From: Setoptus koraiensis
Taxonomy: Eukaryota; Animalia; Arthropoda
Assembly: GCA_048013815.1 (NCBI GenBank)
Contig: CM106585.1
Location: 7,130,001 to 7,194,000 of the forward strand
DNA length: 64,000 nt
Direction: 5' to 3'
The position numbers were made by a program, and so were the translations under genes. The notes below the pieces were generated by a model. That model did not search any database and was not told the DNA's origin. It worked only from the letters and a program-made list of their open reading frames with translations. Positions 2,084 to 23,517 of this stretch are shown piece by piece (position 1 is the stretch's first letter; each line of letters starts with the position of its first letter).

Positions 2084-3574
2084 ATGGCAATAATATGCAA
2101 GACGAACGGCTCTGCGACCAATGGCCATCATCACGACCAGCAGACGAGTAAAAAGTTGCTGTTTGCATTCTTTCCTATCGAAGGCCATGGTCACATAAAT
2201 CCGTCAGTCAGTATGGCCAACGCATTAAGGGACAGGGGTCATGATACTGTATTCTTGTGTATTAACGACATTGGTTACACCGGTCATCGAGTTGTTTGTT
2301 TAAAGAAACTAATGGAAGAAGAGGATGACAAGGAGCCACAACAGAAAGAAACCACGTTGAACACAGATCAGAAAGTTAGCCAAGCCGACAAGGCCATGAC
2401 CAAGCGAATGGACGCAATTCAATTCGGTGATGACCCTGCAATTGCACTCAAGAATGTTTTCTCGGCATTTACCGACGCATTCCAAGAACTGCTAGACCCC
2501 AAATGGGACAAAGCATTAAAGGACACCATTTTGGACATGAAGCCCGATGTAGTGGTCGTTGATCACGCCGTTGTACCAGCCATAATGAATCCAGCCAACA
2601 ATCTAAAATGGGTGAGAGTTGTCTCCACAAATCCAATGGTATTATACGCCGTAAGACGGCCCGACTTAATGCCGGCCCCCTCTCTGGGCGCTCCTACTAA
2701 AGGTCTCAGCGAGAAGGAGCGAGAATTGACCTGGAAAACATATCTAGAGGGCAAAAATGTATTGAGACCAACGACGGATCGTTTGCGTGAACTAGCTGGA
2801 TTAGGACCGGAAATTGAACATGATCCGGCGGCTGAATCACCTCATCTCAATCTATACATTTATCCGCGCGAATTGGACTACGATCAAGAGTTTGGTATCA
2901 CATTGCCCAATTGGGTTCGTATTCAATCCATGAATAGACCCAATAAACATCAACAATTATTTGGCGACAGGCAGAACAACAACACAACCATTAATTCTCT
3001 ACTGTCCTCATTGGACATACCCGAAGAGTTGCGCGATTTCATCCAGCAAGACGATCAGCAAGAGAAGAAAAAATTGATATACTTGTCTTTGGGCACAATA
3101 GCCTGTATGGACGTAGACAGAATGAAACGTCTTGTGAGTCTGTTCGCAAAAACACCCTACAAATTAATAGTATCAAAGGGAGCTCGTCACGAAGAGTTTG
3201 ATCTGGCGCCAAATATGTGGGGCGCCAAGCATGTCCCACAGAGGGAGATATTGCTTCTGGTTGACTTGGTTATAACTCACGGTGGCAATAACACTATAAC
3301 CGAATGTCTGTACTCGGGTGTGCCGGGTATTATTGTGTGTCCAATGTTTTGCGATCAATATGACAACGCAACCAGAATGGAAGAAAAACGTTTGGGTGTT
3401 AGAGTAGATCTAGGCAAAGAGAACTCCGAAGAAAATTTGCTCAAGTCTATTGAGAAGGTGCTGGCCGATAAGGAAATGAGAGAGAACATAAGGAGAGTTA
3501 GTTCCGAGTTGCGTCAACCGAACGATGGTCCCGAGAAGGCCGCTGAAGTTTTAGAAAAACTTGCCTTAGCTTGA
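2084..3574 (+). CDS. UDP-glycosyltransferase (GT1, bacterial MGT/OleD-like cytosolic type)
   Basis: Intronless 496 aa ORF with GHGHINP (catalytic His), LIYLSLGT and the UGT signature HVPQREIL...ITHGGNNTITECLYSGVP..CPMFCDQYDNA. No signal peptide and no C-terminal TM anchor. Confidence 0.93.
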   Translation: MAIICKTNGSATNGHHHDQQTSKKLLFAFFPIEGHGHINPSVSMANALRDRGHDTVFLCINDIGYTGHRVVCLKKLMEEEDDKEPQQKETTLNTDQKVSQADKAMTKRMDAIQFGDDPAIALKNVFSAFTDAFQELLDPKWDKALKDTILDMKPDVVVVDHAVVPAIMNPANNLKWVRVVSTNPMVLYAVRRPDLMPAPSLGAPTKGLSEKERELTWKTYLEGKNVLRPTTDRLRELAGLGPEIEHDPAAESPHLNLYIYPRELDYDQEFGITLPNWVRIQSMNRPNKHQQLFGDRQNNNTTINSLLSSLDIPEELRDFIQQDDQQEKKKLIYLSLGTIACMDVDRMKRLVSLFAKTPYKLIVSKGARHEEFDLAPNMWGAKHVPQREILLLVDLVITHGGNNTITECLYSGVPGIIVCPMFCDQYDNATRMEEKRLGVRVDLGKENSEENLLKSIEKVLADKEMRENIRRVSSELRQPNDGPEKAAEVLEKLALA

Positions 3575-4168
3575 GTTGAACTGCTGGTCAATTCAAAGTT
3601 TTAAACAGAATGAAACCGTAGCAACAGAGTTACACACTGTGAAGACTTTCAATTTTAATGAAGTTTAGTCCCTTTTTTGACAATTTTAGCAAATGTTTTT
3701 AGAGCTCTGGGAGTTATAAATAAAGTCACAAAAAGAACTGAAAATTGCAAAAATCAGAGGTGTGACTGCTCAAGTTTTATATATCTCTGCTGCTTATATT
3801 ATGTATATACTTTCTTTTTCAAATATCCCCGAGATAAGAAGGTTCTTTCAAAATGTAGATAAAAAAGTGGACAAGCAGAAAGAAAGGCAATGTTGTATGG
3901 GATTAGAACTAACCAGTGACTGGAAACTATGAGCACGCAGAGAAACAGACATCTCAAAAGCACCATCATGGTCTCAAGTCGTGTAGATGGAGCAGAAGAT
4001 TTCATGCATGACTTACTGCCGAGAAACATCCGTGCTGAATGAAATGACCGATACTAGGGATAGAGAAGAGGCCGTATAACGCTTAAATTTTTATTGGCAA
4101 CAAGCGGATATGGTTTGCATAGATAATTGTTGTTATTATGTTTTCTTTTTCTTCTTTTCACCGAATGG

Positions 4169-4611
4169 CTAGCCAAAAGGTCCTCGTGTCTGCCCGAGAT
4201 TTTGTTGCTGCTGTCTCATGAGCTGTGCTATTAAACTGAATTGAGGCGAACTGTTGAGAAAACTCGTAATATCGAAACCCTGCGATGGCGTACTCACAGG
4301 ACTTGTTATCGGCCTTGCCCTCGGTGGAGGATTCAAAATCGGACGAGGGGTTGTTCTTGCTTGACTAGTATAAGGAGGTGGATTTGATATTGGTAGATTC
4401 TGAGAAACTCTAGTTTGCTGCTGTGGGCCACGATTGACATTTGTGTAGCTATTGTGGGCCATCTGATGAGGTTTCGTCTGGTGTGTCGAAGTATTTTGCA
4501 TGGGTATTTGTTGTTGGTGCTGATGTTGTTGTTGGTGTTGTGGCCGATGTTGTTCCCGTTGTTTCGACTGCTGCTGCTGCTGTTTTGGCTGCGATTGTAA
4601 CTGAAGCTGTG

Positions 4612-4642
<31 letters not shown>

Positions 4643-5212
4643 TTGTTGCTGTTGCTGCTGTTGTTGCTGTTGTTGTTGTTGTTGTTGTTGCTGCTGCTGC
4701 TGCTGCTGTTTAGGTTGCCTTGGTTGGGCAGGAGTAGCTTGACCGACCGTAACATTGGTATCTTGAGTGCCTGCTACGGCCAGTGACGACGGAGGCTTGT
4801 GGCTGATTATTGTTACTTGTGAGTTTGACGAAGGTGTCGAATGGGTCGTCTGCGACTGAGTTACTGCCTGTTTCTTTTTCTTTCTGATTGGCTCACTATC
4901 AGCATTTTCCTCTCTAGACAAGGGTCTAAACTCAAGTTTGCCCGTATTAATGTAGAAGCCGCCATATTTTGTGGTCAATGTTGACGGTACCAATTCGTCG
5001 TATGCCTCATCATTATCTATAAATGGATCTTTGAGATCATAACCGCTTCCTTTGTCGATGTGATCCTCATAAATGCGTTCCATGTGCACCTTGCCACATC
5101 TTGATTCCACGAGATCAGAATAAGAAAACTCTCCTCCGTGTTGTTTGAGGTCTATGGTAAAACGTATTGTTTTCTTGATGGTATTCGATTTGCCTGATTG
5201 TTGATTATCCAT
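4169..5212 (-). CDS. Ubinuclein/yemanuclein-like protein (HUN/HRD domain plus polyQ tail), copy A
   Basis: HRD motif [43 protein letters not shown]. Start placed at MDNQQ (5212), which is shared with copy B; an in-frame ATG also exists at 5251. Confidence 0.85.
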
Positions 5213-5445
5213 TTTGTTAGCCTGGTCTCCAGTGTTTCTAGAGTATGTCATTGGTAGTCCTGGTCTTTTGCAAATGATAAATCCGATTCCTGCCTCTAAT
5301 TTCCTATCATTCGTATCGAGTTGAAAATTATCTGTAATAATGTAATAATGAACGATATACAATGATATATGTGTTCAATGAATATTTTTCATTGGAATGC
5401 AAATTATTCCCATTAATATCACCATCCTTGGTCGGGATGGAAATA

Positions 5446-5492
5446 AAAACAAAGACACGCGTAGTTCTAAAATGGCTCTGCAGGCGTCGCTC
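5446..5492 (-). promoter_or_regulatory. Upstream element conserved between the two ubinuclein-like paralogs
   Basis: Minus strand reads GAGCGACGCCTGCAG...ACTACGCGTGTCTTTGTTTTT, matching 17169-17216 on the plus strand, while the surrounding upstream DNA has diverged. Confidence 0.5.
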
Positions 5493-6076
5493 ATGAGAAT
5501 ACCTCGGCACGCCCAACTCAGAGTCATGAAAGAGCCTACGTACGCACCTTTCTAAACCCAACTCTCAATACACAATTCAAGTTGTGATTCATAACCAATA
5601 TCGTTTTGATAATTGTTGTGTCAATTCAATTATTCTGTAAACCAAACTTTGTCAGCAACTGAAGATAATCAAGGAATTGACGCAATCGGTCTTGTTTTCT
5701 ATCCCTTCAGTGGTACGATGGGTATTTCGACCGAAAGCACCCACCAGTGCATCGAGGATCGGAGTGGGCAAACAAATCCACAGGGGGGCGCTAAAATCAT
5801 GTGTTTTTGTGTTTGAATGTTATTTTGTGAGCGACCTCTTCAGTAGTAATCTTGAACTTATACTTGTACTGATGCATTTTCGGCCACGCTCTCCGTTCTC
5901 GAGCTGCACATGTGACCGTGCAACAAGACGATTTTATCAAAATTTTATCTTTACACAATTCTAACCGTCTCCAGCTAGATAATTCCATCTTATATTATCA
6001 GTCATTTCAGGACCTATTTGTTATAATATTGTTGTCGATTTAGCCTCATTCCGGGTCAAATTTGGATATAGTCACC

Positions 6077-8182
6077 ATGAAGAATTTGATCACAATCGAC
6101 GATAATCGTCTACTTATTTGGGATACAAAAGGTCACATAATATGCCGTAGTATAGACGATCAGAGTAACTCACCTACGAAAAACAACAAGCAACCTCAAA
6201 AAGAAGTAAAACTTATGCTAACAGAGAGGCCATACTTTTGGAATGATGTTCTGGATATTAGTCTCAGTCCTAATAAATCATTGCTTGCCCTTAGAGGATC
6301 CAAAGGGGTTTGCATTGTGGATCTGCCCAAAAGATGGGGCGGCCAATATAAAGATGTATACTATTGTAAAACGTGGAACATTAACGAGCGTCAACTCAGT
6401 TGCACAAGAGGACTTCAAGTGTATCAAGTAGAATGGCATCCGTTCAGCACTGATGACCTACAGATACTTTGCATCCTAACTAACGATAACTTTTTAAGAC
6501 TTTACGATGCGAGACAACATCGCAACGACGACGACGAATTACAATCTGTGGACCTGAGCAGGACAACAACTGGTGATTTAGATGTCAGTGACGACATTTT
6601 AAGCGCCACTATGAGTAGGCTGGACCTTGGCGAGGTTGTTGTAGCTTTCGATTTTGGTCCTCCCATGTCAGTTTTTACAGGCGACCCTCTCTGGCCTATT
6701 TATTTCGTCAAAGGTACCGGTGAAGTCCTGTTGGTATATTGTAGCCCACTAAATCCAAGCTACACCAAAAAAGTTTTTGGGCCACTTACCATGTTACCAC
6801 AAGCTGACGACAACTATGGGTCAGACGCTTGTAGCCTTATTGTACTCGATAGTTTTCCACCATTGTTGGCCATAGCTACATCATCGGGATCCATTTATCA
6901 TTGTTTTGCCATATCAGAGGATATACAAGATCATAATCAATCGAGAGATATCTTACCAAATCAAACTTTGTATGTCTATGATATCATGCAACTATCATTG
7001 AATCTCGCTGAATGCACCGACGAACCTTATTTCACCTACCAAATGAGATTGCACAAGGATAAGACCAGTAACATAAGATATTTTTGCACGCACCCTCACG
7101 GCATTCATATGGTGATATTTCCCATAATAGAGACAGTAGAGTCTGGACCGGCGGAAATAGCAGCTCTCAGAGTCGATGTTGAATCATTTGCAGAATACTT
7201 AATCTGCACGAAACCTTTGCCTTTAAGAAATGAACAAAGTGATGACGAAAACCCCTCCGACTTGTACCAATCCTCTCCTAAAGGTCTTGTGGTGGAAGCC
7301 ATGCTATCCAACATAGTTCTCATTACTATATTGGACAAAAATGAAATTGTTACCCGTAGACTCAGGCCTGCTGCAACGCTAAATTGTAGCCATTTCAGTG
7401 GTAGAAAAGAAGATAAGAATTCCTCAAGAGCTAATGAATCGCAACTTCTCGAAAGTTCGCGGATTGAAGCATCCTCAGTTAATTTTGAGGAACAAATACA
7501 GATGATTCTCAGAAGAAAGATGAGTGTACCTCTATTAAAATCATCAGATTTAGAAGATAAAAGTTTGGAAGGCTCACAAGAAAGTTCTGATCTCATTTTA
7601 GATTTTGTAGAGAAGACAACATCCATCATAAGGAGTGAGTTCTTGAAACGATTCAAGACGGCATCGGAAGCAATCCTTAAAAAATTTGAATTGCTTAGAG
7701 AAGATGCTGAGTGTCAATCAAATGAAATCCAGAATATAATTAGACAAAAACAGGATGTATTCAATTCTTTTGTCGCTCTCACAACCAAAGCGGACAAAGC
7801 GTGTCAAACTCAAGAGTCTCTTCTCAACCGGATCACCTCCACCTTAGAATGGCTACGTCGACGACAATCTGAACTGTCGGACGCGGAGTGTAAACTAAAA
7901 CTGGATATGTTAAGTTTAAGGAGCGAACTAAAGCTGTCACAAGATCGTTTGGACTCGGTCAGAAGTAAATCCAAGTACCAAAAAGACCTTGATGAGAAGA
8001 TGAAGAGGTCAAACTCAAGCTTTGGTCTTCAATCTAATGGCAAGGAATGTGACACTGCACCCACCGAAAATCAGTTGGCCGGTATTAAAGAGATATTACA
8101 AAGGCAGGGCAATGAAATAGCTGAGTTGAAGAAAATGTTGAGAGCCTATACTGCCACAGGGGTGTCGACTCAAGGCATCTGA
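6077..8182 (+). CDS. Nup88: Nuclear pore complex protein Nup88
   Basis: N-terminal propeller motifs (LSPNKSLLALRGSKGVCIVDLPKRWG, QVEWHP, ILTNDNFLRLYD, VAFDFGPP, TMLPQADDNYGSDACS) and a C-terminal coiled coil. First ATG is at 6077; the track start is TTG. Confidence 0.85.
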   Translation: MKNLITIDDNRLLIWDTKGHIICRSIDDQSNSPTKNNKQPQKEVKLMLTERPYFWNDVLDISLSPNKSLLALRGSKGVCIVDLPKRWGGQYKDVYYCKTWNINERQLSCTRGLQVYQVEWHPFSTDDLQILCILTNDNFLRLYDARQHRNDDDELQSVDLSRTTTGDLDVSDDILSATMSRLDLGEVVVAFDFGPPMSVFTGDPLWPIYFVKGTGEVLLVYCSPLNPSYTKKVFGPLTMLPQADDNYGSDACSLIVLDSFPPLLAIATSSGSIYHCFAISEDIQDHNQSRDILPNQTLYVYDIMQLSLNLAECTDEPYFTYQMRLHKDKTSNIRYFCTHPHGIHMVIFPIIETVESGPAEIAALRVDVESFAEYLICTKPLPLRNEQSDDENPSDLYQSSPKGLVVEAMLSNIVLITILDKNEIVTRRLRPAATLNCSHFSGRKEDKNSSRANESQLLESSRIEASSVNFEEQIQMILRRKMSVPLLKSSDLEDKSLEGSQESSDLILDFVEKTTSIIRSEFLKRFKTASEAILKKFELLREDAECQSNEIQNIIRQKQDVFNSFVALTTKADKACQTQESLLNRITSTLEWLRRRQSELSDAECKLKLDMLSLRSELKLSQDRLDSVRSKSKYQKDLDEKMKRSNSSFGLQSNGKECDTAPTENQLAGIKEILQRQGNEIAELKKMLRAYTATGVSTQGI

Positions 8183-8941
8183 AGTAATGATATTTCTATA
8201 CGATTATAAAAATTGTAGATCAGCTCTGATGTGTGCATCTGCAATCTGTAACATTTCCATAATCTTATATATGTACAAATAGAAGTTTGAATTGACAGCA
8301 TCAGTCGAGGTCCTGTGATCGAAATCATTCTCTTTTTCCTTTGAAGTAATTCACCAAGTCAACAAGTCATTCTCTTGTTGCTTCATGAGTATCGTTTTCG
8401 AAGACTATTTTTACTGAACGATGAACTCCAAACTTTTATAGGGTGGTGTAAGAAATTTTGTGAATTATACTCCGTTTTGCGAGCCCAACTCATGGTTATT
8501 CAATGTGTTCTACCGCGAAGATAGACCGAGACTCATTGCAGTATGACCATCATTATCTATCTCCTTTAATTCCAATGGATATTTTGGGCCGATTCACTCG
8601 GCGCGAAAGAAGTCACCAATCATCGAGGCTAAAGGGGTGTCGCTAATTGACACAGGATATATCTCATTATCCTTTATATATCTTGTTGACCATTCACGAT
8701 TCCGTCGCTTTGGTTAACAATCTCAGTATCATAATTCATTCGAGTTAATCACAGTACTATTATGTGTCTACATTAGCAGGTGGATAAAGTTCGTCTTCTA
8801 TGAATGTGTGACTTTGAGCACATTGATTTGATCTTCGAACGGAAAATCTCATCGGAAGAAATTTATATAGACACAGTAGAATAGTCAAGAGAGGGATGTA
8901 ATGGCAGAGCAGCGATTGTTGGCAACAATTTTCCTGTATAA

Positions 8942-11074
8942 TCATGCACGAAACGACTTGAAACCCATAGATAACAATCTATCAAATATGGAAGCTTGTG
9001 AATCTGAAAGATCGCTATATTCTTGGTCACCTACAAGCTGATCGTCGCCATTGACCAATATGATTCTTCTAGGAAGGCACCCTATAATTTTCGAAAATTC
9101 GCTAACGTTTAGCTGGCGACAATCGTCGATGATGACAGAGTCGAACTTAAGCTCATCGTGTTCAAATTGCAATCTGATTGCGTTAGCCGAACTGCAGCAA
9201 AAAACGTCGACCCCAATCATCACTTCTCTTAAGCAACTGTCGTAGTAACCGTCCCAATAGAAGTCGCCAGCATGGATAGAATGTTTCAGCTCCAACCCAG
9301 ACATGACATTCTTATTTACACCCGGATATCTGACCGGTAGCTCCTGCAGACGCTGATTTAGATGGAAAGGCTTCACCAATTGACATCTCAAATCTCCGGG
9401 GCGGTAACACGTCACTCTTACTTTGCCCTCCGCGTGTATATTATCCGCGACAATATCTGAAGATGTACAAATCAAAATCTTGTAGACTTCATGCGATCTC
9501 GTTTTGAATAAGCTATGCGCCAGCGACTCAACAGTCGACAATCGAATGTTACTATTGGGCTCTGTGATGAGCGTAAGCCTGTGAGTGAGCGAATGGATGA
9601 TCGCTTCTCGGTGATATTCATTTACGAGTTCACAGAGATCGCTGTCATCTATTTTAGTGGATCTCAGTTTGTTCCTAGCCTCAAGCCTCGGAAATGCATC
9701 CATGCTGTCCAACAAGATCCCACATAAGAAACTGTCTGTCAGTACACTTAACGATCGGCTTGAATCGTATAGCCCAGTGTTTATGAAGAGTCCACTATAG
9801 CTGAGGTGGAAACGATCGGTCCTCATGTTTGTGGAAAATAAAGCAGTGGTCAGTTTCTCAGGTAAATCCGGGTGCGATTCCAGACCGAACGGCTTCCCAT
9901 ACCAATTAAGTAGCAAATAAATGAATGATTCATCGTATTCCTCTCCAGCGCAAAAGTCGCTCTTATGAGCGATGGAGCCTAACCAATCGTTTAACTTTGT
10001 TTGTTCATTCGATAAGATCAGAATATCGTCTGGCAGCAAATTGCGAACAAATGATGGCTTCAAGTGGTCTACACTGATTTTAGCATAGCAGGACGGTCGG
10101 CCACGATAATCTTTTATCGTTGATGTCAATGGTCCATATGTTACTGGCACGGCTCTTGGTTGCTCAATCTTTCTGGATTTCCTATAGTGCCGATACAGAG
10201 CGCTGAGTTGGTCAATTTTCTTATATTCTTCACTTGAATAGTTCTCGACCGTCTCACTGCTATCATGATGATATTTGAAGATGTGTGCATTTATGGGCAA
10301 TGTAGCAGATTCAGGGTCGAGGCCGTTTATTTGTTTTAGTTCGGGGCAATTACTTATTATTGTAGCAATATCATCTACACTAAGACAGTGGAATTCGATG
10401 GACAAATACTCTAAATTTTGACAAAATTCGTGCAGAAATTTCATCTTACCAAAGTACATGTATGCATCAACATCTGTCACAAATGATTTTAGACTGTAAA
10501 CTCCAGAAGGATTCTGAATGTAAGCATGTTTCAAGTAAGGAGCCTCATCTTCTGGCTTCACGTAGTAAAAGGTATTTCTCAAACTGAGATGCAACAACCT
10601 ATCGCGGCAGATATCCATAACTTGTGTTAGTTCCGAAACTCTCTCCAATAACATATTATCCAATGTTAGTGCTGTTATTTTGACACATTTGCTGGCAATT
10701 GAAGTGAGCTCGCCATAAGCAATTGACAATCCAGTAAGATCTAAATGGGTTAAGTTGATTAAATTGTCCGATATGATGCAATGCATACCTGACCCGATTC
10801 GCTTGATGACATTGGTCTTTTTCATATTACAAAAGCTAGCATGCGTTATCTGAGGCATCTTCTTGAATAGTGGCTCCATAGTTTCAAGATCGATTGATCG
10901 GGACTCATGGTGATCTAACGACAAACTCGTGAGGCGCCGGTAGGAATCATTGACCACTCGATTGAGGCTTTTACACACTCTGGCTAGATTGCCGCGATCA
11001 GTGAGAGTCTGTAGGTGATTTATGATACAAAACCAGATATCGTCTGGCAATTTACTGTAATCAAATTCTTCCAT
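8942..11074 (-). CDS. F-box/LRR protein fused to a degenerate UPF1-like SF1B helicase half, copy 1 (710 aa)
   Basis: F-box LPDDIWFCIINHL..TDRGNLARVCKSL; FBXL-type LRRs (LTHLDLTG, LLHLSLRN, LEYLSIEF). The C-terminus carries SF1B-like motifs ILICTSSD, DVFCCS, FDSVIIDDCRQ, IILVNGDDQL and SIFDRLLSMG. Confidence 0.8.
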   Translation of the reverse strand: MEEFDYSKLPDDIWFCIINHLQTLTDRGNLARVCKSLNRVVNDSYRRLTSLSLDHHESRSIDLETMEPLFKKMPQITHASFCNMKKTNVIKRIGSGMHCIISDNLINLTHLDLTGLSIAYGELTSIASKCVKITALTLDNMLLERVSELTQVMDICRDRLLHLSLRNTFYYVKPEDEAPYLKHAYIQNPSGVYSLKSFVTDVDAYMYFGKMKFLHEFCQNLEYLSIEFHCLSVDDIATIISNCPELKQINGLDPESATLPINAHIFKYHHDSSETVENYSSEEYKKIDQLSALYRHYRKSRKIEQPRAVPVTYGPLTSTIKDYRGRPSCYAKISVDHLKPSFVRNLLPDDILILSNEQTKLNDWLGSIAHKSDFCAGEEYDESFIYLLLNWYGKPFGLESHPDLPEKLTTALFSTNMRTDRFHLSYSGLFINTGLYDSSRSLSVLTDSFLCGILLDSMDAFPRLEARNKLRSTKIDDSDLCELVNEYHREAIIHSLTHRLTLITEPNSNIRLSTVESLAHSLFKTRSHEVYKILICTSSDIVADNIHAEGKVRVTCYRPGDLRCQLVKPFHLNQRLQELPVRYPGVNKNVMSGLELKHSIHAGDFYWDGYYDSCLREVMIGVDVFCCSSANAIRLQFEHDELKFDSVIIDDCRQLNVSEFSKIIGCLPRRIILVNGDDQLVGDQEYSDLSDSQASIFDRLLSMGFKSFRA

Positions 11075-11375
11075 TTCCGTGTGAAGAAATTCACAGAGGC
11101 TCTGGGTTGATTACAGAGACGCCTAACTCTAATACCTTCGTTAGTAAAGATTTCTAGTTGGTAGTTTATTGGTTGTCGTTTCGGATTTTTCTAATATACG
11201 AGCGACTGATAGAGAGAAAATTTTTGCGTTGCAAGTGGTGGCATTCGTTTCCAGTCTATGCATCGAAAAACCAATGCGGGAGGCCTGGTGTGTTGCCACT
11301 GGCGCAAAATTTTCATTTCTGTCTATGGAAGAGAGCAAAGTTTTGTGAAATAGTGCGTGAGGTAAGGAATAGGCC

Positions 11376-11662
11376 TACTTTGTTGTTGTAGTCCACTAAA
11401 TCTAACAAGAAATTCTACCTATGTGTTTAACTACCCTTGAGTTCTCAACAGGTTGAGCTAAACTGAAAAAAGACTTCTCGGATCACTCGATATGTTGAGG
11501 CAAGCTGGCGAAAACTATGGGCCTGGCCTCATTGATTAGACCTTCAAACAAAATATTTCATTGGAAAAATCTAAGAAATTTAATTAAACACCATAGAACA
11601 AGAGAACAACCAAAGAGATACAAGAACAGCAATGTTTTGCAGCAGTTTTCATGTATAATCAT
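11376..11662. repeat. Near-identical spacer segment of the F-box tandem array (copy at 14095-14381)
   Basis: About 285 bp, TACTTTGTTGTTGTAGTCC...TTTTCATGTATAATCATG, occurs twice with about one mismatch by eye. Confidence 0.85.
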
Positions 11663-13803
11663 GCACGAAACGACTTGAAACCCATAGATAACAATCTACT
11701 AAATATGGAAGCTTGTGAATATGAAAGATCGCTATATTCTTGGTCACCTACAAGCTGATCGTCGCCATTGACTAATATGATTTTTCTAGGAAGGCACCCT
11801 ATAATTTTCGAAAATTCGCTAACGTTTAGCTGGCGACAATCGTCGATGATGACAGAGTCGAACTTAAGCTCATCGTGTTCATATTGCAATCTGATTGCGT
11901 TAGCCGAACTGCAGCAAAAAACGTCGACCCCAATCATCACTTCTCTTAAGCAACTGTCGTAGTAACCGTCCCAATAGAAGTCGCCAGCATGGATAGAATG
12001 TTTCAGCTCCAACCAAGACATGACATTCTTATTTACACCCCGATATTCGACCGGTAGCTCCTGCAGACGCTGATTTAGATGGAAAGGCTTCACCAATTGA
12101 CATCTCAAATCTCCGGGGCGGTAACACGTCACTCTAACTTTGCCCTCCGCGTGTATATTATCCGCGACAATATCTGAAGATGTACAAATCAAAATCTTGT
12201 AGACTTCATGCGATCTCGTTTTGAATAAGCTATGCGCCAGCGACTCAACAGTCTACAATCGAATGTTACTATTGGGCTCATTGATGAGCGTGAGCCTGTG
12301 AGTGAGCGAATGGGTGATCGCTTCTCGGTGGTATTCAATTACGAGTTCACAGAGATCGCTGTCATCTACTTTAGTGGATCTCAATACGTTCCTAGCCTTG
12401 AGCCTCGGAAACGCATCCATGCTGTCCAACAAGATCCCACATAAGAAACCATCTGTCATCACACGTAACGCTCGACTTGAATCGTATAGCCTGGTGTTTA
12501 TGAAGAATTTACTATGGCTGAGGTGGAAACGATCGGTTCTCATGTTTGTGGAAAATAAAGCAGTGGTCAGTTTCTCAGGTAGATTCGGGTGCGATTCCAG
12601 ACCTACCGGCCTGTCACCCCAATTAAGCAGCAAATAAATGAATGATTCATCGTATTCCTCTCCAGCGCCAAAGTCGCTCTTATGAGCGATGAAGCCTAAC
12701 CAACGGGGCTTTCGTTCCTTCGTTCGTCTTCCTTTATTCCATAAGATCAGGGGATCGCCTGGCAGCAAGTTGCGAACAAATGATGGCTTCAAGTGGTCCA
12801 CACTGATTTTAGCATAGTAGGACGGTCGGCCACGAGCACCTTTTATCGGCTCTGATGTCAATGGTCCATATGTTACTGGCACGGCTCTTGGTTGCAACTC
12901 AATCTTTCTGGATTTCCTATAGCGCCGATACAGTGCCCTCAGTTGGTAATTTTTCTTAGATTCTCCACCTGAATAGTTCTCGACCGTCTCACTGCTATCA
13001 TGATGATATTTGAAGATGTGTGCATTTATGGGCAATGTAGCAGATTCAGGGTCGAGGCCGTTTATTTGTTTTAGTTTGGGGAATTTACTTATTATTTCAG
13101 CAATATAATTTACATGAAAATATTGGAATTTGATGGACAAATACTCCAAATTTGGACAAGATTGGTACATAAATTTCATATTTTCAAGGTATTTACCAAC
13201 TATTGTCACAAATGATTTTAGACTGTAAACTCCAGAAGGATTCTGAATGTAAGCACGCTTCAAGTAAGGAGCCTCATCTTCTGGCTTCACGTAGTAAAAG
13301 GTATTTCTCAAACTGAGATGCAACAACCTATCCCGGCAGATATCCATAACTTGTGTTAGTTCCTCAAAGTCCTCCAATATCATATTATCCAATGTTAGTG
13401 CTGTTATTTTGACACATTTGCTGGCAATTGAAGTGAGCTCGCCATAAGCAATTGACACTCCAGTAAGATCTAAATGGGTTAAGTTGATTAAATTGTCCGA
13501 TATGATGCAATGCATACCTGACCTAATTCGCTTGATGACATTGATCTTTTTCATATTACAAAAGCTAGCCTGCGTTATCTGAGGTATCTTCTTGAATAGT
13601 GGCTCCATAGTTTCCAGATCAATCGATCGGGACTCATGGTGATCTAACGACAAACTCGTGAGGCGCTGGTAGGAATCATTGACCACTCGATTGAGGCTTT
13701 TACACACTCTGGCTAGATTGCCGCGATCAGTGAGAGTCTGTAGATGATTTATGATACAAAACCAGATATCGTCTGGCAATTTACTGTAATCAAATTCTTC
13801 CAT
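11659..13803 (-). pseudogene. F-box/LRR/UPF1-like gene copy 2, interrupted by one premature stop
   Basis: ORFs 12253-13803 and 11659-12192 are in the same frame. TAG at 12253-12255 corresponds to TCG (Ser) at 9536-9538 in copy 1, and the downstream frame is intact to the shared stop. Confidence 0.8.
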
Positions 13804-14094
13804 TTTCGTGTAAAGAAATTCACAGAAGCTCTGGGTTGATTACAGAGACGCCTTACTCTAATGCCTTCGAAGTTCATTCTAGCTGGTAGTTTATTGGTTG
13901 TCGTTTCGGATATATACGAGTGACTCATAGAGCGGAAATTTTTGCGTTGCGGGTGGTGGCATTCGTTTCCAGTCTATGCATCGAAAAACCAATGCGGGAG
14001 GCCTGGTGTTTTGCCACCGGCGCAAAATTTTCATTTCTGTCTATGGAAGAGAGCAAAGTTTTGTGAAATAGTACGTGAGGTTAGGAATAGGCCC

Positions 14095-14381
14095 TACTTT
14101 GTTGTTGTAGTCCACTAAATCTAACAAGAAATTCTACCTATGTGTTTAACTACCCTTGAGTTCTCAACAGGTTGAGCTAAACTGAAAAAAAACTTCTCGG
14201 ATCACTCGATATGTTGAGGCAAGCTGGCGAAAACTATGGGCCTGGCCTCATTGATTAGACCTTCAAACAAAATATTTCATTGGAAAAATCTAAGAAATTT
14301 AATTAAACACCATAGAACAAGAGAACAACCAAAGAGATACAAGAACAGCAATGTTTTGCAGCAGTTTTCATGTATAATCAT
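14095..14381. repeat. Near-identical spacer segment of the F-box tandem array (copy at 11376-11662)
   Basis: Direct repeat of 11376-11662 at an offset of about 2.72 kb. Confidence 0.85.
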
Positions 14382-16492
14382 GTACGAAACGACTTGAAAC
14401 CCATAGATAACAATCTGTCATATATGGAAGCTTGTGAAAGATTGTGTGTCATTCCCGCCTCGCTCTTTTCATAGACATCTACAAGCTGATCCTTGCTATT
14501 GACTAATATGATTCTTCTAGGGAGGTATCTGCTAATTTTCAGAAATTCGCTAACGTTAAGCTGGCTACAATCGTCGATAATCATCGAGTCAAACTTCAGC
14601 TTGTGGTGGTCACGATGCAATCTGACTGCGCCAATCAAACTGCAGCACAAAACCTGGACGCTGTCCATCGCTCTTCTCGAGCATTTGTAGTAATACTCTC
14701 TCCAAGCATCTGATGTGGCATCATCGAAATGTAAATCCTCTAGCCTAGATATGACATTCGTATCTACACCCGGAAATTCGAAAGTTAGCTCCTGCAGACG
14801 CTGATCTAGATGGAAAGGCTTCACCAATTGACAACCTATGTCACCGGGACGGTAACTTGCTACTCTTACTTTGCCCATCTCGTCTATTTTTTCCGCTGCG
14901 ATATCTGAAGATGTACAAATCAAAATCTTATAGTATTCATGAGATCTTGTTTTGAATAAGTAATACGCGAGCGACTCAACAATCGACAATCGAATATTAC
15001 TATCGGGCTCTGTGATGAGCGTAAGCCTGTGAGTTAGTGAATGGGTGATCGCGTCTCTGTGGTATTCATTAACAAGTTCACAGAGATCGCTGTCATCTAT
15101 TTTAGTGGATCTCAGTTTGTTCCTAGCCTCGAGCCTCGGAAACGCATCCATGCCGTCCAACAAGATCCCACATAAGAAGCTATCTGTCAATACGCGTAAT
15201 GCTTGAATTGAATCATCTGGTCTATTGGACAAAGCTTTCTTGAGTTCGAGATGCATGAGATGGAAATGGTCGGTCTTCATGTTTGTCGAAAATAAAGCAG
15301 TGGTCAGTTTATCGGGTAGACCTTCCGGTCTACCATAGTTATTAAGTAGCAAATATATGAAGGATTCATCGTATTCCTCTCCAACGCGAAAGTCGCTCTC
15401 AGAGAGGACAAATCCGTTCAAATTGACTCTTCTTCGGTAATTATATAAGTCCAGATAATCGCCTGGCAAAAGGTTACGAATAAATGATGGGTTCAAGCAA
15501 TCTACACTTATTCTGGCATAATAGGCAGGCGGCCAGACATCTATGGTTTCTGATATGACTGGTCCATAAGTTATTGGCACGGCATCTTGTTGGCACTCAG
15601 TCTTTGTGGATTTCCGATAGTATCGATATAATGCCATGATTTGGTCAATTTTCTCAATTTCTTCACTTGAACGATAGTCGTAAGTGGCACTTGCATCATA
15701 GAATTGAGTGAATATGTGTGCATTCGAGAGAAACGTAGCAGATACAGGATCAAGGCCGTTTATTTGTTTTAGTTTGGGGCATTTACTTATTATTTTAGGA
15801 ACTTCGCTAGAAGCATAATCGGCCAGATCTTCGTGTTTGAATTTGATAGACAAATACTCTAAATTTGGACAAGATTTCACGAATTCCATTGTTTCATCTA
15901 AGCTAACGGTTATCTCTAACGATTCAAGACTGTAAACTCCAGAGGGCTCAATATAAACATCGTACAAGGAGTCAAAACTGTAGTAAGAGGTATTTCTCAA
16001 ACTGAGGTGCAACAACCTATCCCGGCAGATATCCATAACTTGTGTTAGTTCCGAAACGTCCTCCAATATCATATTTTCCAATGTTAGTGCTATTATTTTG
16101 ACACATTTGCTGACAATTGAAGTGAGCTCGCCGTGGGCGATTGGCACCCTAGTAAGATTTAAATTGGTTATGTTGGTGCAGTTGTCAGATATGACACAAT
16201 GCATACCCGGTCCAATCCTCTTGATGACGTTGATCTTTTTCATATTACAAAAGCTAGCATGCTTTATCTTAGGTATCTTCCTGAATAGTGGCTCCATAGT
16301 TTCTAGATCGAGCGATCTGGGCCTGTGGTGATCAAACGACAAACTCTTGAGACGTCGGTAAGAATCATCGACTAATCGATTGAGGCTTTTACACACTCTG
16401 GCTAGGCTACCTCGATCAGTGAGAGTCTGTAGGTGATTTATGATACAGAACCAGATATCGTCTGGCAATTCGCTATAATCAAATTCTTCCAT
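14378..16492 (-). CDS. F-box/LRR protein fused to a degenerate UPF1-like helicase half, copy 3 (704 aa, most divergent)
   Basis: Same architecture: LPDDIWFCIINHL F-box, LRRs, ILICTSSDIAAEKI, FDSMIIDDCSQ, NLSQASIYDRLLSMG. Confidence 0.8.
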   Translation of the reverse strand: MEEFDYSELPDDIWFCIINHLQTLTDRGSLARVCKSLNRLVDDSYRRLKSLSFDHHRPRSLDLETMEPLFRKIPKIKHASFCNMKKINVIKRIGPGMHCVISDNCTNITNLNLTRVPIAHGELTSIVSKCVKIIALTLENMILEDVSELTQVMDICRDRLLHLSLRNTSYYSFDSLYDVYIEPSGVYSLESLEITVSLDETMEFVKSCPNLEYLSIKFKHEDLADYASSEVPKIISKCPKLKQINGLDPVSATFLSNAHIFTQFYDASATYDYRSSEEIEKIDQIMALYRYYRKSTKTECQQDAVPITYGPVISETIDVWPPAYYARISVDCLNPSFIRNLLPGDYLDLYNYRRRVNLNGFVLSESDFRVGEEYDESFIYLLLNNYGRPEGLPDKLTTALFSTNMKTDHFHLMHLELKKALSNRPDDSIQALRVLTDSFLCGILLDGMDAFPRLEARNKLRSTKIDDSDLCELVNEYHRDAITHSLTHRLTLITEPDSNIRLSIVESLAYYLFKTRSHEYYKILICTSSDIAAEKIDEMGKVRVASYRPGDIGCQLVKPFHLDQRLQELTFEFPGVDTNVISRLEDLHFDDATSDAWREYYYKCSRRAMDSVQVLCCSLIGAVRLHRDHHKLKFDSMIIDDCSQLNVSEFLKISRYLPRRIILVNSKDQLVDVYEKSEAGMTHNLSQASIYDRLLSMGFKSFRT

Positions 16493-17168
16493 TTCCGTGT
16501 GTAGAAATTCATGGATTCTCTAGTTGAATTATAACTCTAATACCGTGGCAAGAAACCTTCACTACTTAAGTTGGTAGTTCGGTGGTTGTAAATTTTTCTT
16601 ATTATTTGTCCTTTTATATTTCCAGCATCTCCCAGCGGCTCTCTCGTGCATAAGATCTCCCTGAATGAGATGCCTCCCATTAGAGCAGCCTACAAGTACC
16701 AGAGATAAGAGCACATAGATCCGCACCATAAACAAGTGGTTCCGGAGGGTCAAATGCAAAGAGAGAGTGAGCAAACCAAATGTAATTCAAATGTAATGCA
16801 GCAGGGGGTGGCATTCGGTTTCAGCCGACATACAACGAAAAACTGATCCGGGAGCCGGGCGGGTCGGCACTGGCAAAAATTGTTCGCATTTTTGCCTATG
16901 GAAAAGAGCAAAATTTGTTGCATTAGTACCTGAGGTTTGGTAGCTACTTTGTTGCTACATGATACAATTAATATGCAAATGCGGCTTATCTCTAATTTGT
17001 TGCATGTTTGCAACCAATGCAAATGTTTCATCAGATTTAATACGAGATTGGAATTCCTATCAGCCGATCTATGGCGAAAACATCATTGCTTGCATGATGG
17101 TGATGTATTCATGCATGTAGGCATGAGCGATAAGAAATAAACTAGCCTGACGAATCATGAGCATTCGC

Positions 17169-17216
17169 GAGCGACGTCTGCAGCACGAATTCCAAACTAC
17201 GCGTGTCTTTGTTTTT
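17169..17216 (+). promoter_or_regulatory. Upstream element conserved between the two ubinuclein-like paralogs
   Basis: GAGCGACGTCTGCAG...ACTACGCGTGTCTTTGTTTTT matches the reverse complement of 5446-5492. Confidence 0.5.
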
Positions 17217-17364
17217 GTTGTGTCTCTCGACCAATGATAACAATGAGATCAAAATTAATTTGCCTGCCTACTAGAGATATTCATTATATACATGTATCAT
17301 TTTATTTTGTTCATCTTTGATCAATTATCAGATAAATTTTAACCAACCACTTTTAGCCAACAAA

Positions 17365-18315
17365 ATGGATAATCAACAATCAGGCAAGTCGAATAGCATC
17401 AAGAAAACAATACGTTATACTGTAGACCTCAAACAGAATGGAGGCGAGTTTTGTTATGCTGATATCGTCGAATCAAAAGGTGTCAAGAGGCGCATGGAAC
17501 GCATTTATGAGGATCACATCGACAAAGGAAGCGGTTATGATCTCAAAGATCCATTTATAGATAATGACGAGGCATACGATGAATTGGTACCGTCAACATT
17601 GACCACAAAATATGGCGGCTTCTACATCAATACGGGCAAACTTGAATTTAGACCCTTGTCTAGAGAGGAAAATGCTGAAAATGAGCCAAACAGAAAGAAA
17701 AAGAAACAGGCAGTAACTCAGTCGCAGGCGATCCATTCGACACCTTCGTCAAACTCACAAGTAACAATAATCAGCCACAAGCCTCCGTCGTCACTGGCCG
17801 TAGCAGGCACTCAAGATACCAATGTTACGGTCGGTCAAGCTACTCCTGCCCAACCAAGGCAACCTAAACAGCAGCAGCAACAACATCAACAACAGCCACA
17901 GCTTCAGTTACAATCACAGCCAAAACAGCAGCAGTCGAAACAACGGGAACAACATCAGCCTCAACACCAACAACAAATGCCCATGCATAATACCTCGACA
18001 CCCCTCACGAAACCTCAACAAATGGCCCACAATAGCTACACAAATGTCAATCGTGGCCCTCAGCAGCAAACTAGAGTTTCTCAGAATCTACCATTATCAA
18101 ATCCACCTCCTTATACTAGTCAATCAAGAGCAAACCCTCGTCCGATTTTGAATCCTCCACCGAGGGCAAGGCCGATTACAAGTCCTGTGAGTACGCCATC
18201 GCAGGGTTTCGATATTGCGAGTTTTCTCAACACTTCGCCTCAATTGAATCTATTAGCGCAGTTCATGAGACAGCAACAAAAAAATATTGGACAGACACGA
18301 GGACCTTTCGGCTAG
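17365..18315 (+). CDS. Ubinuclein/yemanuclein-like protein, copy B (inverted paralog of copy A)
   Basis: HRD motif identical to copy A and a short Q tract. First ATG (MDNQQ) is at 17365; the track start is TTG. Confidence 0.85.
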
Positions 18316-21300
18316 CCATTCGGTGGAAAGAAGAAAAAGAAAATATAATAACAACAATTATCTATGCAAACCATATCCGCTTGTTGTAGGTCTGACAGCA
18401 ATTGAATCGTTGGACAGACTCTCTCAAGTATTTTTGTTCTTGTTATTTTCTCTTTCTGTCTAATAATAGTTTACCTAATTATCATTATGATTGTGATCAA
18501 TAGCCTCGCGCCAGTACCATTGGTAGCGCCACAATAGATTCTGGGAGTAGGTTGTTTTTTTTTTCTTTTTCTTTCCATTTCTAGTGTGGTGTTTGTCAGA
18601 GTCGGAAAAGCAACATCGCCAAATAGTGCAGCGAGGTGCAATGATTGTTATTGCTTTTGTAATCAACTTTTGCAGTTGCGTGAGCCGACTCCGTCGGTCG
18701 ATTTTACTGTACTTATGTTATGAGGCAATGAGGCAGAAGAAGGAGAGAGAATCGCTAATGGTAGCGGCATGAACTTGTTTTCGAAGTGGTAAGAAGAAAG
18801 GCAAATACAACCTGTTTCGTGTGGCGCTGAGAAAGCGGAGAAAAAGAAAGTGGTCTCGATTAGAGAGGCCAGCCAGTGTACCGTCAATTCAAACTTATTT
18901 CCATACATAGGTAAGCCGATGAACCAGTTGCCATTGCCGCTAACATGTGTGTACAATGATGTGATGACCTAAAGATGAAGATCTTGTTCCGTTATAAGCG
19001 TTACAATAATAATAGTGGTAATAAAAAGGCAACGACGCAAACGCCGGTGATTTAATGCCAACCGATGATGACTCAAGATTGTGTTTGAGGCTCGGTGAAC
19101 GGACTTGAGTCGGCGGTTATCATCATGAATGGGCATGAAACGGCTATTCTACTGGTCAGTTGTTTCAGCCGGCCATGTTAGTCGCATATTGGCTCTTCCA
19201 TTAAAGATGAAATGGGAGTGGAAACGGGCAGCCAGAAAAAAATAATAATCATCATCATCGTCATCAGCGGCAAGTGGTGCAAGTGTCACTTGAGACGACG
19301 CTGAATTAATGAAAATTCGATTGCCCCCAGGCTGTTTGGCGGCGTTGTGACCGGAAGTAAGAAGGTAAGCGAGCAGTGTCCATTGGAACTTTCGTTTTTA
19401 AAAGTTCCGTTTAACAGGATTGGTTTGGTTCGGTGTGGAAGTGAGTGAGAGATACAGATAGAAGCAATCATAGATTCACGACACACCGGGCCTAGAGCTG
19501 GCCGATTAACGGCCAGCAGACGGCAAACGGCAAACAAAAGCAATACAAACAACTGTCATACTGTACAAACGGGGCAAGCGTGCAAACGACAAGCATGAGA
19601 TAGTTGATTCATTTAAATTCATCCTGACGGTTGTATCGGCGATTGCGTTGTTGTTGGCCGGCGTACATGATCGAAGGTGGCTGCCGTTATCTCTGGTCGC
19701 TAGTCGCTGGTTGAGCCTCTTTAAAACGACGACGACAACGAGGCTGGGTTGTGTGACGTCATACGACAACGACGATGAAACAATCAGAGCGGCGGTGGTA
19801 AAAAACTAATGCGCACACAATGAAGAAAAGCAATCGATCTCATTGATTAAGGATAGTGGTTGTTTGTTGTTGTTGTTTTGCTCGCTTGCAACGATCTATC
19901 GGGATCATCAGCTATATATACAGGCTATATGTACATGTTGAGCTCGGTAGAAGCCACCACAAAATGGCTGGCATCTTCTCAGCATTAGTGTACAGGTGAC
20001 GTTATTAGATTAGTTCTAGTTTGAAAGTGGATTCAAGTGAACAAGCACACTGATGATGCAATACATGCACTAACTAAAAATAGTGGCCAGCGCGCCGGCC
20101 AATAGCTGGCACAACAAATGGCAAGCAAACAACTGCAAATGGCTAATAGCAAACAACAACAACAACAAATGGCTAATAGCAACCAACAACAACAAATGGC
20201 GCGCCGAGTGCGGCAAATACGGCAAACAGCAAATTGAATGGATGCTAGAGCGGTTTGCAATTGTTAAAAAGTTTGCTAGTTGAGTCACACACAGTTTGTT
20301 GTTGGCAAGCTAGCGGAGGGAAATTATCAACAACAACAACAAGACGCGATGATTGACAGTCGCTCGATGGCGCGCATGACGATACCATTAGGCCGGCGAT
20401 GACGGCAACCGCAATGACAATGGCAGCCATTGAACAATGATGTTGCACCAACACGGTATATATAACATAATCATACAAGTGGTTGCTGGGCCATCATCAC
20501 TAATCATCGTGGCCACTTGCTCACTCATGGCTGCTATCTCATGGCGCCATCTTGGCCGTGCCGTGTGGCCCGCTGGCCGCCGGCTGCTGGCCGCTGGCCA
20601 CTGGCAAGCTAGCGAATCAATATATGACTGCTGGCTACACTATAACTGTACACTGGGCACTTGTTAGCAATGGGTCGTCGTTGTTACACTTGAATTGCAT
20701 CATGATGAGCGCTGCTGATGCAACCGCTGTGGACAACAACATCATGAGCCGATTTGAGCCACAAGTCGACAGAGGAAGCCGCTGATGGTGGCGCCGCCGC
20801 TTGTGAGCCAACGCATCGCTGAATCGGCCCAATCCCAATCGCCATCAGCTGACTTCTTCGCTGGCAAGCCAGCGAACCAGCCCAAAGTTGGTGGCGGCCA
20901 GCGGTAGGCGAATTGCATGGCTGCCTCATACTTTGTATCCAGGCTACTATATATTTATGGCGTATATTTGATACGACGACGACGACGACCACGGCGGCGG
21001 CCTGGCCAGTGGTCGCCGTCGTCGTGCTGGCGGGTTCGCGCAGCCGCAGGTGATTGCGATGGTGCGGCGCCAGCAGTCGAGCCGTGTCTCCCGCGACCGA
21101 CTGTCCGGCGCCCGGGCAACACACGGCTTCCACTTGGCTCGCCGGGCAGCGCCGAGCAGTTGCGCAATGCTCGAGCACGGCCCGACAACGGCCGCTCGCA
21201 TAATTGATGCGGGATACATGCTCGACGGCTCCATTAATCTGGCCGGCCCTGCAACAGCGCCCGCAAACAGGCAACAACCAGCAACAACCACACCAACTGC

Positions 21301-22652
21301 GCTCGCACGGCACTTTTCCTCCGCTCTCCGGGCCGCCCGATCTTCCGCTGGCCGCCCAATCTTCCGCTGGCCGCAGGCCCGAGCGGGCTTCCTTGTCGGA
21401 CACGCCCCCATTGGCGTACTCACCTGTCGAAGGTGCCATTATGGCATTGTGCCGTATGGATCGGCGCGGATCGTTGTGCGCCAACATTTAACAGATAATC
21501 GCCCGCAATAACATGAGCATTCGTTGTTTTGGTTGTTTTTGGCGTCCGCCAGTTGAGCTGCCATCGGGCGTTTATTATGACACAAACGGCGAGCCGATAT
21601 TGTTATCATTTGACCGACCGATCCATCACCGATGCACCGGCTCCTGCGACGGCAATCTTGCGATTATGACGCCATGGCTCGCAGCGTCGAGACAGCGTCG
21701 TGGCGTTACAAGACGAGCGACACATAGTGTCCATAAATGGCCAGCTCCGTTTGTGGCAATTTGTGCCTCTTGCTGCCACTTGTGTGTTGCGCAATCGATC
21801 GACGGAGACTCCCACGGCACACTGGCCAGACGGGCTCACCTTGAGCGGCCCGTTGTGAGCCGGCGCGGCCAGTTACGACGGTCGCGGCCGGCTGCTGTGG
21901 CCGTGCAAATGGTGCGGAGAAGCAGCAAAAAGGAGATAGGCAATGGTATTGTTGATAGTTTTGTTGTGCGCACTCGCCGCCATTTGCCAAGTCGGCCACT
22001 TGTTGCGCTCGCTTGCCAACCGAACGCAACAGCGCAGCGCAACACCAAAAATAACCGCAACGGGCCAAATATCCGCCGGCCAATATTGTTGCCGCGTCGA
22101 GCCATGTATCATGTATAACAATATCGGGCAGCCATTGTGCGCCGTGTGTCCGTTTCACGTCAATCGATCGGCCTAGGCAAATTGATGGCGCTTGTCTAGC
22201 GGTGCGTTTGCGGTGGCGCTCGTTTTATATCGGGCTCGTTTTATGCACACAAATTACAGGTAGACTTGGCAGGCTTCTCACACACAAGCGAGCGGCCACA
22301 AACCGAAAAGCAAGATGCAAACGAGTAATTGTATGCACGCCGATGAGTGCCATTCAAAAATATGTTGCGATTGATTTCCCAATTGGACAGTTCCCGAACC
22401 GGCAAGCCGGCAAACCGGCGCCAATGCGCAACAAGTGAACCGACCTGACCGAGCGAATTGCGGGCCAGCGGCAACGGTCTTGCCAGAAGCCATTCATCAA
22501 TAACAATGGCTGCGTTGTTATTGTATTGTGTTGCCGGGTCGCACCGCGAGCGGACGGTAACAGCGCCACTGCGCCGCCAGATTGGCCAAACTCCGGCGCT
22601 CGCCAACCGGGCCGCCTCCGCAACCATGCAACCGCGCACCAGTCCGCCACTC

Positions 22653-22737
22653 TACCTGTGCTCCCCTCACCTGTCCTCCCTTCGCCTGTGCTCCCTTCAC
22701 CTGTGCTCCCTTCACCTGTGCTGCGTGTACCTGTGCG
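22653..22737. repeat. 15-bp-period tandem repeat containing CACCTG/TACCTG cores
   Basis: Units start at 22653, 22668, 22683, 22698, 22713 and 22728; consensus CACCTGTGCTCCCTT. Confidence 0.85.

Positions 22738-23516: not shown

Positions 23517-23517
<1 letters not shown>

Follow-up and report, generated by a model that had tools for sequence, protein, structure and literature searches.

In a 64 000-nucleotide stretch of the genome of the mite Setoptus koraiensis (GenBank assembly GCA_048013815.1, contig CM106585.1, positions 7,130,001 to 7,194,000; hereafter the window), three tandem, intronless and colinear open reading frames (ORFs) of about 710 residues each lie on the minus strand (table 1). 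They encode an N-terminal F-box and leucine-rich repeat (LRR) region fused to a C-terminal module homologous to the first half of the RNA helicase UPF1, in which the ATP-binding residues are degenerate and the second RecA domain is missing. F-box proteins select the targets of Skp1–Cul1–F-box (SCF) ubiquitin ligases, and their substrate-binding domains set what they recognise. The proteins probably belong to a family of SCF-type substrate receptors, restricted to mites, in which a pseudo-helicase serves for ATP-independent binding.

F-box/LRR proteins with a UPF1-type half-helicase

An N-terminal F-box followed by FBXL-type LRRs had been proposed for each copy in the original prediction, made from the DNA sequence alone, and this assignment held up. 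The Pfam F-box models PF12937 and PF00646 scored 29–31 and 26–30 bits, respectively, in copies 1–3 (curated cut-offs 24.3 and 20.5), and the gathering scores of both were also exceeded by the relative P0001. Pfam LRR models fell short of their thresholds in the window copies. When residues 1–300 of nine sequences, the stand-alone relative P0005 among them, were combined into a profile, only F-box/LRR proteins stood at the top of its PDB matches: COI1 (E = 6.4e-5), a plant F-box protein (4.4e-4), SKP2 (5.2e-4) and TIR1 (1.3e-3), followed by MAX2 and RAD7. The alignment with SKP2 runs from the F-box through the first LRRs. Protein-language-model features of the same residues were nearest to F-box/FBXL clusters, with scores (0.88–0.90) that serve as a lead only. 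On these matches the N-terminal half is read as an F-box plus FBXL-type LRRs, with moderate support for the LRR part.

For the C-terminal half, single-sequence phmmer searches of the PDB gave no significant match, and a family profile was required to detect homology. A four-member profile retrieved human UPF1 and yeast NAM7 (hmmsearch, E = 2.3e-13 to 2e-12, profile positions 473–695), with SEN1 next (E = 1.7e-5). Aligning the six-member family with a 15-member UPF1 alignment in hhalign gave a probability of 99 (E = 2e-18) over residues of about 447–704. The Pfam model AAA_11 scored 22.6 and 25.1 bits in the window copies, just under its cut-off of 27 but with both model ends matched colinearly, and exceeded the cut-off in the relatives P0002 (40.3 bits), P0003 (28.5 bits) and P0004 (41 bits). 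Language-model features of residues 300–710 were nearest to AAA_11 clusters (score 0.97). The pairs of motifs originally matched between this half and the superfamily 1B (SF1B) helicase core of UPF1 were reproduced in the alignments, namely the Q motif, Walker A, Ia, the VxCC(T/S) strand, Walker B, III and the SLFERL helix.

Structural comparisons yielded the same family. The full-length AlphaFold2 (AF2) model was predicted from the family only, without UPF1 rows in the multiple sequence alignment, and had a mean predicted local distance difference test score (pLDDT) of 52.9; the F-box/LRR half was badly modelled, and the arrangement of the LRRs relative to the pseudo-helicase is not readable from it. 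UPF1 nevertheless provided the top Foldseek matches (E = 7.6e-14), with residues 304–709 aligned to UPF1 324–694, domain 1B included. A second AF2 model, of residues 270–710 with UPF1 rows added to the alignment, reached a pLDDT of 72.4 and a predicted template modelling (pTM) score of 0.73. In fold comparisons with VIA, this second model placed residues 281–710 on human UPF1 297–698 (Z-score 22.3, 365 aligned residues), and the VIA runners-up were Aquarius, SEN1, IGHMBP2, ZNFX1 and DNA2 (Z-scores 18–20) and nidovirus nsp13 (Z-score 14). The ranking was unchanged among AlphaFold DB clusters (UPF1, 4.8e-17). The proposed SF1B match is therefore recovered by profile (E = 2e-13) as well as by fold. 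For the 1B barrel, the original match stands by fold and not by sequence: the strands agree between both AF2 models, while the Pfam model UPF1_1B_dom found no match and hhalign stopped short of 1B. The models thus support a 1B barrel in the module on fold evidence only. Derivation of the helicase part from a virus or transposon was considered and rejected, as viral matches were weaker (best 4.6e-10) than those to cellular UPF1 and the nearest relatives are cellular-type paralogues.

In SF1 helicases the ATP site lies between two RecA domains. The Walker A motif, GxxGxGK(T/S), is degenerate in all six full-length family members, reading EPNSNIRL or EPDSNIRL in copies 1–3 and differing again in the relatives; the DE of Walker B is DD in copies 1–3 and DN, ID or EN in the relatives. 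The loss of the Walker A glycines and lysine and of the Walker B glutamate, first noticed in the window, is hence common to six of six members. The proteins also stop, as had been claimed, where RecA2 would begin, at the equivalent of UPF1 residue 698 and some six residues ahead of motif IV (QYRMHP) of the intact relatives, so that motifs IV–VI and the arginine finger are lost along with RecA2. Pfam found no match in the window copies to RecA2 (AAA_12, PF13087) or to the CH zinc-knuckle domain (PF09416). A hidden downstream RecA2 exon was ruled out by tblastn with the RecA2 domains of P0009, P0006, P0008 and P0010, which detected no remnant across the 64-kb window. With the Walker A and Walker B residues named above and the entire RecA2 domain lost from an ATP site that lies between RecA domains, the module is predicted to be incapable of binding and hydrolysing ATP or of translocating as a helicase.

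The three copies, arranged in tandem units of about 2.72 kb, had been taken as alike. Their domains are indeed colinear and their coordinates correct, but an in-frame TAG in copy 2, which splits its ORF into 516 and 177 aa, had been overlooked. Coverage by public contigs is too thin at this position to support or contradict the stop. When the differences between copies 1 and 2 were polarised with copy 3 and P0001, the two branches carried 24 non-synonymous and 9 synonymous changes versus 25 and 9, and all five indels between the copies comprise whole codons. Given these equal branch loads and the in-frame indels, the stop is either recent or an allele or assembly error. Copy 3 shares 66–69% protein identity with copies 1 and 2.

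Table 1. Features of the F-box/half-helicase gene cluster, in window coordinates; residue numbers refer to the encoded proteins.
Feature	Position	Strand	Description	Evidence
Copy 1	8942–11074	−	Intact 710-aa ORF: F-box, LRR, stalk/1B/RecA1/1C pseudo-helicase	ORF, Pfam, UPF1 homology
F-box of copy 1	10931–11056	−	Residues 7–48	PF12937 29 bits, PF00646 26.1 bits
LRR-type region of copy 1	10295–10927	−	About residues 50–260	Profile matches, E 6e-5 to 8e-3
First stalk helix and 1B-like β-barrel of copy 1	9785–10234	−	Residues 281–430	AF2 strands, UPF1 297/324 to about 414
Second stalk helix, RecA1-like domain and 1C-like insert of copy 1	8957–9763	−	Residues 438–706, ending where RecA2 would begin	
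Walker A equivalent of copy 1	9539–9562	−	Residues 505–512, EPNSNIRL; glycines and lysine gone	Aligned to UPF1 GPPGTGKT
Walker B equivalent of copy 1	9113–9133	−	Residues 648–654, IIDDCRQ; catalytic glutamate replaced	Aligned to UPF1 LIDESTQ
Spacer between copies 1 and 2	11075–11658	.	Within duplicated 2.72-kb unit	96.5% identity to spacer 13804–14377
Copy 2	11659–13803	−	Colinear with copy 1, 88% aa identity; one in-frame stop	
In-frame TAG of copy 2	12253–12255	−	After codon 516, inside the Walker A equivalent	Direct sequence reading, translation
Spacer between copies 2 and 3	13804–14377	.	Within duplicated unit	
Copy 3	14378–16492	−	Intact 704-aa ORF; 66% identity to copy 1; closest copy to P0001 (73%)	
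Block-divergent stretches	9785–10500 (copy 1), 12500–13230 (copy 2)		Copy 1 versus copy 2	

Relatives, origin and selection

An exhaustive phmmer scan of 1.84 billion representative proteins returned 12 matches. Four are full-length family members (P0001, P0003, P0004 and P0002, with 58%, 40%, 36% and 33% identity, respectively); the others are the stand-alone protein P0005, two short fragments (P0007, 129 aa; P0012, 115 aa) and five helicases or helicase-derived proteins. A profile search of a 5.8-billion-protein set with the family alignment had P0001 and P0002 among the matches listed. These four family members, P0005, P0006 and P0009 all come from a single Logan-assembled run, SRR33593474. 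Since the synonymous divergence between copy 3 and P0001 is 0.87, the source of this run must be another species, or at least not this genome, and it is probably a sister species. The protein collections searched contain none of the proteins of the S. koraiensis genome itself, so the family may also occur in further mite genomes that lack annotation.

The run also contains relatives of each half. P0009 (710 aa) is a complete helicase that has a RecA2 domain and in which both Walker motifs are intact, and P0006 is a full-length UPF1-like paralogue in which the Walker A lysine has changed to valine and the Walker B aspartate to asparagine; both lack the CH domain. In a PDB search, P0009 and P0006 matched UPF1 (235 and 184 bits) far better than they matched SEN1 (130 and 105 bits), IGHMBP2 or any further helicase of solved structure. 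Phylogenetic analysis placed the half-helicase family in one clade (support 100/98), sister to P0006 (98/87) and then P0009 (100/99), with the family split from 15 canonical UPF1s (100/99), although the branches are long and the branching order carries a long-branch caveat. P0009, P0006 and the family also share family-specific motifs such as LPRR and TR(S/L)H. As judged from these sequences, the module descends from lineage-specific, CH-less UPF1 paralogues and not directly from the factor of nonsense-mediated mRNA decay (NMD).

As a counterpart for the N-terminal half, P0005 (L007:1354-2250) is an F-box/LRR protein of 298 aa that stands alone, ends in an acidic tail and is encoded next to a threonyl-tRNA synthetase gene; it shares 31% identity with residues 3–260 of copy 1; genes of this type are candidate donors. 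The presence of stand-alone helicases and a stand-alone F-box/LRR gene in the probable sister species suggests that the family is a fusion of two pre-existing gene types. In the simplest history, this mite lineage gained a CH-less UPF1 paralogue, one copy of which was joined to the end of a P0005-type F-box/LRR gene, with loss of RecA2 and of the ATP site. No F-box exon was found upstream of the intact helicase P0009. The three window copies cluster in the tree with P0001 outside, and the triplication is on this basis either species-specific or homogenised.

Further features of the helicase paralogues were observed. P0006 (L005:892-3366) has a hydrophobic, membrane-anchor-like N-terminus and a low-complexity acidic stretch, and just upstream of it lies the C-terminal end of a second helicase of this type (L005:21-197), so the helicase paralogues are in tandem too in that species. 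P0011 (430 aa) is UPF1-like, with a degenerate Walker A (GSNLTAKCE) and an intact Walker B, and its sequence ends between RecA1 and RecA2. It may be a half-helicase that arose independently, or simply part of a gene model broken off at an intron.

Selection was analysed with Nei–Gojobori estimates of the ratio of non-synonymous to synonymous divergence (dN/dS). Between copy 3 and P0001, dN/dS is 0.18 overall and 0.14–0.21 per domain, with 0.16 for the LRR and 0.21 for the dead RecA1 part. As the ratio against the nearest relative is low in every domain, the fused gene, dead helicase included, has evidently been maintained by purifying selection. The tandem copies diverge faster (dN/dS 0.5–0.9), with 0.49 overall and 0.10 in the F-box for copies 1 and 3, and 0.86 overall and 1.33 in the LRR for copies 1 and 2. 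Differences between copies 1 and 2 fall in blocks at residues 190–235 (the LRR end), 347–370 (a 1B loop) and 429–451, with near-identity elsewhere; residues 190–235 hold 2 synonymous versus 23 non-synonymous differences, and the overall dN of this pair (0.064) is greater than the spacer divergence (3.5%). Copy 3 departs most from the other two at residues 593–622, beside the 1C-like insert.

Some of the difference blocks are also raised in synonymous divergence, and copies 1 and 3 are near-identical at residues 452–480, which indicates that gene conversion among paralogues has contributed. The blocks separating copies 1 and 2 reflect either diversifying selection or patches of sequence converted from other family members. 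Positive selection is not established: residues 190–235 are suggestive, but the counts are too few and are confounded by the likely gene conversion. Homogenised spacers beside diversified coding sequence were also considered as a sign of selection and set aside, since the spacer identity of 96.5% merely fits a recent duplication of copies 1 and 2 (synonymous difference 7%). At window positions 9380–9682, a contig of one public run from a different sample has 9 mismatches to copy 1 in 303 positions; at several of them it agrees with copy 3 or P0001 and not with copy 2, and the contig may represent an allele, a conversion tract or another paralogue.

Mode of action and competing explanations

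If the proteins are substrate receptors, the F-box would dock on Skp1–Cul1–Rbx1, and the LRR solenoid and pseudo-helicase would form an ATP-independent surface that holds the substrate for ubiquitination. SF1B helicases hold RNA across both RecA domains. In addition, the module is acidic in five of the six members (isoelectric point (pI) 5.1–6.5), whereas RecA1 of the intact-type paralogues P0009 and P0006 is basic (pI 8.5–8.8). For these two reasons the substrate is more likely to be a protein or ribonucleoprotein (RNP) partner than naked RNA, and the acidic character, computed from sequence, argues weakly against retained RNA binding.

Several observations weigh against this account. The E-values for the LRR region are modest, and AF2 gave residues 1–300 low confidence. 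Net charge is a crude proxy, and P0002 stays basic. Skp1 docking, substrate capture and the loss of ATPase activity are predictions from sequence. Copy 2 carries a stop codon, relaxed constraint rather than diversification could account for the dN/dS of 0.86 between copies 1 and 2, and the public runs searched gave no transcript of the locus, only DNA-like contigs that span intergenic spacers and break at paralogue repeats. These last three points also speak for decaying or functionless duplicates, the product of a fortuitous fusion drifting towards pseudogenes. However, two species between them hold at least six genes whose 2.1-kb ORFs have stayed open, dN/dS between copy 3 and P0001 is low throughout, indels are in-frame only and copy 2 does not evolve faster than copy 1; of all the explanations considered here, decay is the least probable.

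The receptor might instead be a bait, as the original prediction suggested with UPF1 partners, RNPs and viral NMD antagonists in mind. In that case the dead half-helicase mimics canonical UPF1 or the mite paralogues and attracts their partners or pathogen factors for ubiquitination by SCF. The UPF1 fold has been kept while catalysis was lost, the LRR and a 1B loop contain hypervariable blocks, and the tandem array has expanded with fast divergence of the young copies (dN/dS 0.5–0.9, and about 1.3 in the LRR of copies 1 and 2), a common pattern in conflict-driven gene families. Canonical UPF1, however, meets UPF2 and SMG factors through its CH domain, RecA2 and terminal tails, all of which are missing from the module, and the tree (100/99 and 98/87) traces the module to CH-less paralogues and not directly to the NMD factor. 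This weakens the case for a decoy of canonical UPF1 partners; partners or antagonists of the CH-less paralogues are possible targets. The excess of amino acid changes is, moreover, not statistically secured, the blockiness coincides in part with raised synonymous divergence and so points to gene conversion, viral SF1 helicases are less similar to the module than cellular UPF1 is, and, as a weak argument, the acidic module contrasts with the basic RecA1 of the intact paralogues. We consider a decoy unlikely. Its immune-type variant, in which each paralogue presents on a ubiquitin ligase (E3) a slightly altered dead version of a host helicase surface required by viruses or selfish elements, and any factor that takes hold of it is ubiquitinated by SCF, is improbable; if true, the family would be the counterpart in an animal, based on an E3, of the integrated decoys in plant NLR receptors.

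The module could also grip single-stranded RNA with 1B, RecA1 and 1C without ATP and thereby tether SCF to particular RNPs. These three parts contact RNA in UPF1 structures, a UPF1–RNA complex (PDB 2xzo) is among the top matches, the stretches resembling motifs Ia and III are partly retained, and the pseudohelicase MUT-15 retains RNA binding (bioRxiv 10.64898/2026.09.04.749402). Against this, the SF1B grip on RNA spans both RecA domains and RecA2 is missing, while the module has turned acidic in most members from a basic parental RecA1; RNA guidance is accordingly a shade less credible than a decoy. A role outside SCF, with the half-helicase pairing or competing with intact paralogues as a dominant-negative or heterodimeric regulator and the F-box serving mainly for its own turnover, would suit the coexistence of the intact P0009 and the partly degenerate P0006 with the family in the probable sister species, and the LPRR and TR(S/L)H motifs common to both paralogues and the family. 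Nevertheless, conservation is strongest in the F-box (dN/dS 0.10, copies 1 and 3) and the LRR is conserved between species (0.16), which fits an adaptor better than a mere degron and leaves such a regulator very doubtful. A substrate receptor with an ATP-independent pseudo-helicase surface is the explanation that we favour.

Genomic setting and comparison with known systems

The cluster lies within a part of the window (positions 1–20000) with a G+C content of about 0.40–0.42, compared with 0.53–0.56 at 20000–24000 and 50000–58000. Two HUN-domain (ubinuclein/HPC2-like) ORFs in inverted orientation, at 4169–5362 (−) and 17317–18315 (+), bracket a Nup88 gene (6062–8182) and the three F-box genes. 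They are near-identical except for a polyglutamine tract of differing length, which lowers their overall identity to 66%, and the pair has the appearance of a recent inverted duplication on either side of the cluster. The catalase neighbours are arthropod-like, and no Skp1 gene is present in the window.

We found no description of an F-box joined to a UPF1-like helicase in the literature (full text), and nothing relevant on F-box genes in eriophyoid genomes. The architecture had not been recognised in the original prediction either, and the 1.84 billion representative proteins hold it in only one other sample. To our knowledge, FBH1 is the only well-known fusion of an F-box with a superfamily 1 helicase, and it resembles the mite proteins in this respect and as a subunit of an SCF ligase. 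FBH1 (FBXO18) combines its F-box with an active superfamily 1A, UvrD-type DNA helicase, without LRRs (PMC12946210, PMC2294136). Its helicase is complete and active, whereas the mite module is of the UPF1 type, has lost Walker A, Walker B and RecA2, and follows an LRR domain. No sequence relationship between the two was found: the UvrD-type model PF00580 found no match in the window copies by Pfam, and all sequence and fold matches of the mite module are to SF1B proteins (top UPF1, SEN1 and IGHMBP2).

The best match in both sequence and fold is UPF1/NAM7 (PDB 2gjk, 2xzo, 2wjv and 8rd3), which has the same order of stalk, 1B, RecA1 and 1C. Unlike UPF1, the mite module has no CH zinc-knuckle, RecA2, ATP-binding residues or SQ tails, and it branches with the CH-less paralogues. 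The CH domain of canonical UPF1 resembles a RING, and E3 activity has been connected with it (review PMC9914065); its position is occupied by the F-box/LRR half in the mite proteins, but this is an analogy only.

The FBXL class, which includes SKP2 and the plant proteins COI1, TIR1 and MAX2, likewise has an N-terminal F-box followed directly by LRRs. There the LRR solenoid alone acts as the receptor, sometimes with a small-molecule cofactor, whereas the mite proteins append some 430 helicase-derived residues; no orthology to a named FBXL protein was found. In the lineage-specific expanded F-box families of nematodes and plants, the C-terminal domains are of types such as FTH/FBA, kelch and LRR, and no helicase remnant is known among them. 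Those families (plant survey PMC3030570) are similar in their tandem arrays and rapid birth and death, and in that the presumed substrate-binding part evolves faster than the F-box, although for the mite genes the selection pattern is merely suggestive. Pseudohelicases offer a different parallel. MUT-15 serves as a scaffold (bioRxiv 10.64898/2026.09.04.749402), and it and Utp25 (PMC9539457) are helicase folds that have lost their ATPase motifs and been reused as binding platforms. Both are superfamily 2 (DEAD-box-like) proteins that keep two RecA domains and have no ubiquitin-ligase module, whereas the mite proteins are of SF1B type, with one RecA domain and a fused F-box.

The combination of an F-box/LRR half with a dead UPF1-type half-helicase is apparently undescribed, and the proteins are probably SCF adaptors with a new helicase-derived receptor module. 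With its presumed parts still separate in the probable sister species, the family provides a clean natural example of how a motor enzyme can be pared down and put to use for binding. If its targets are RNP or viral factors, it would be a new link between RNA-surveillance-type folds and targeted proteolysis; otherwise, it is a well-documented lineage-specific curiosity.

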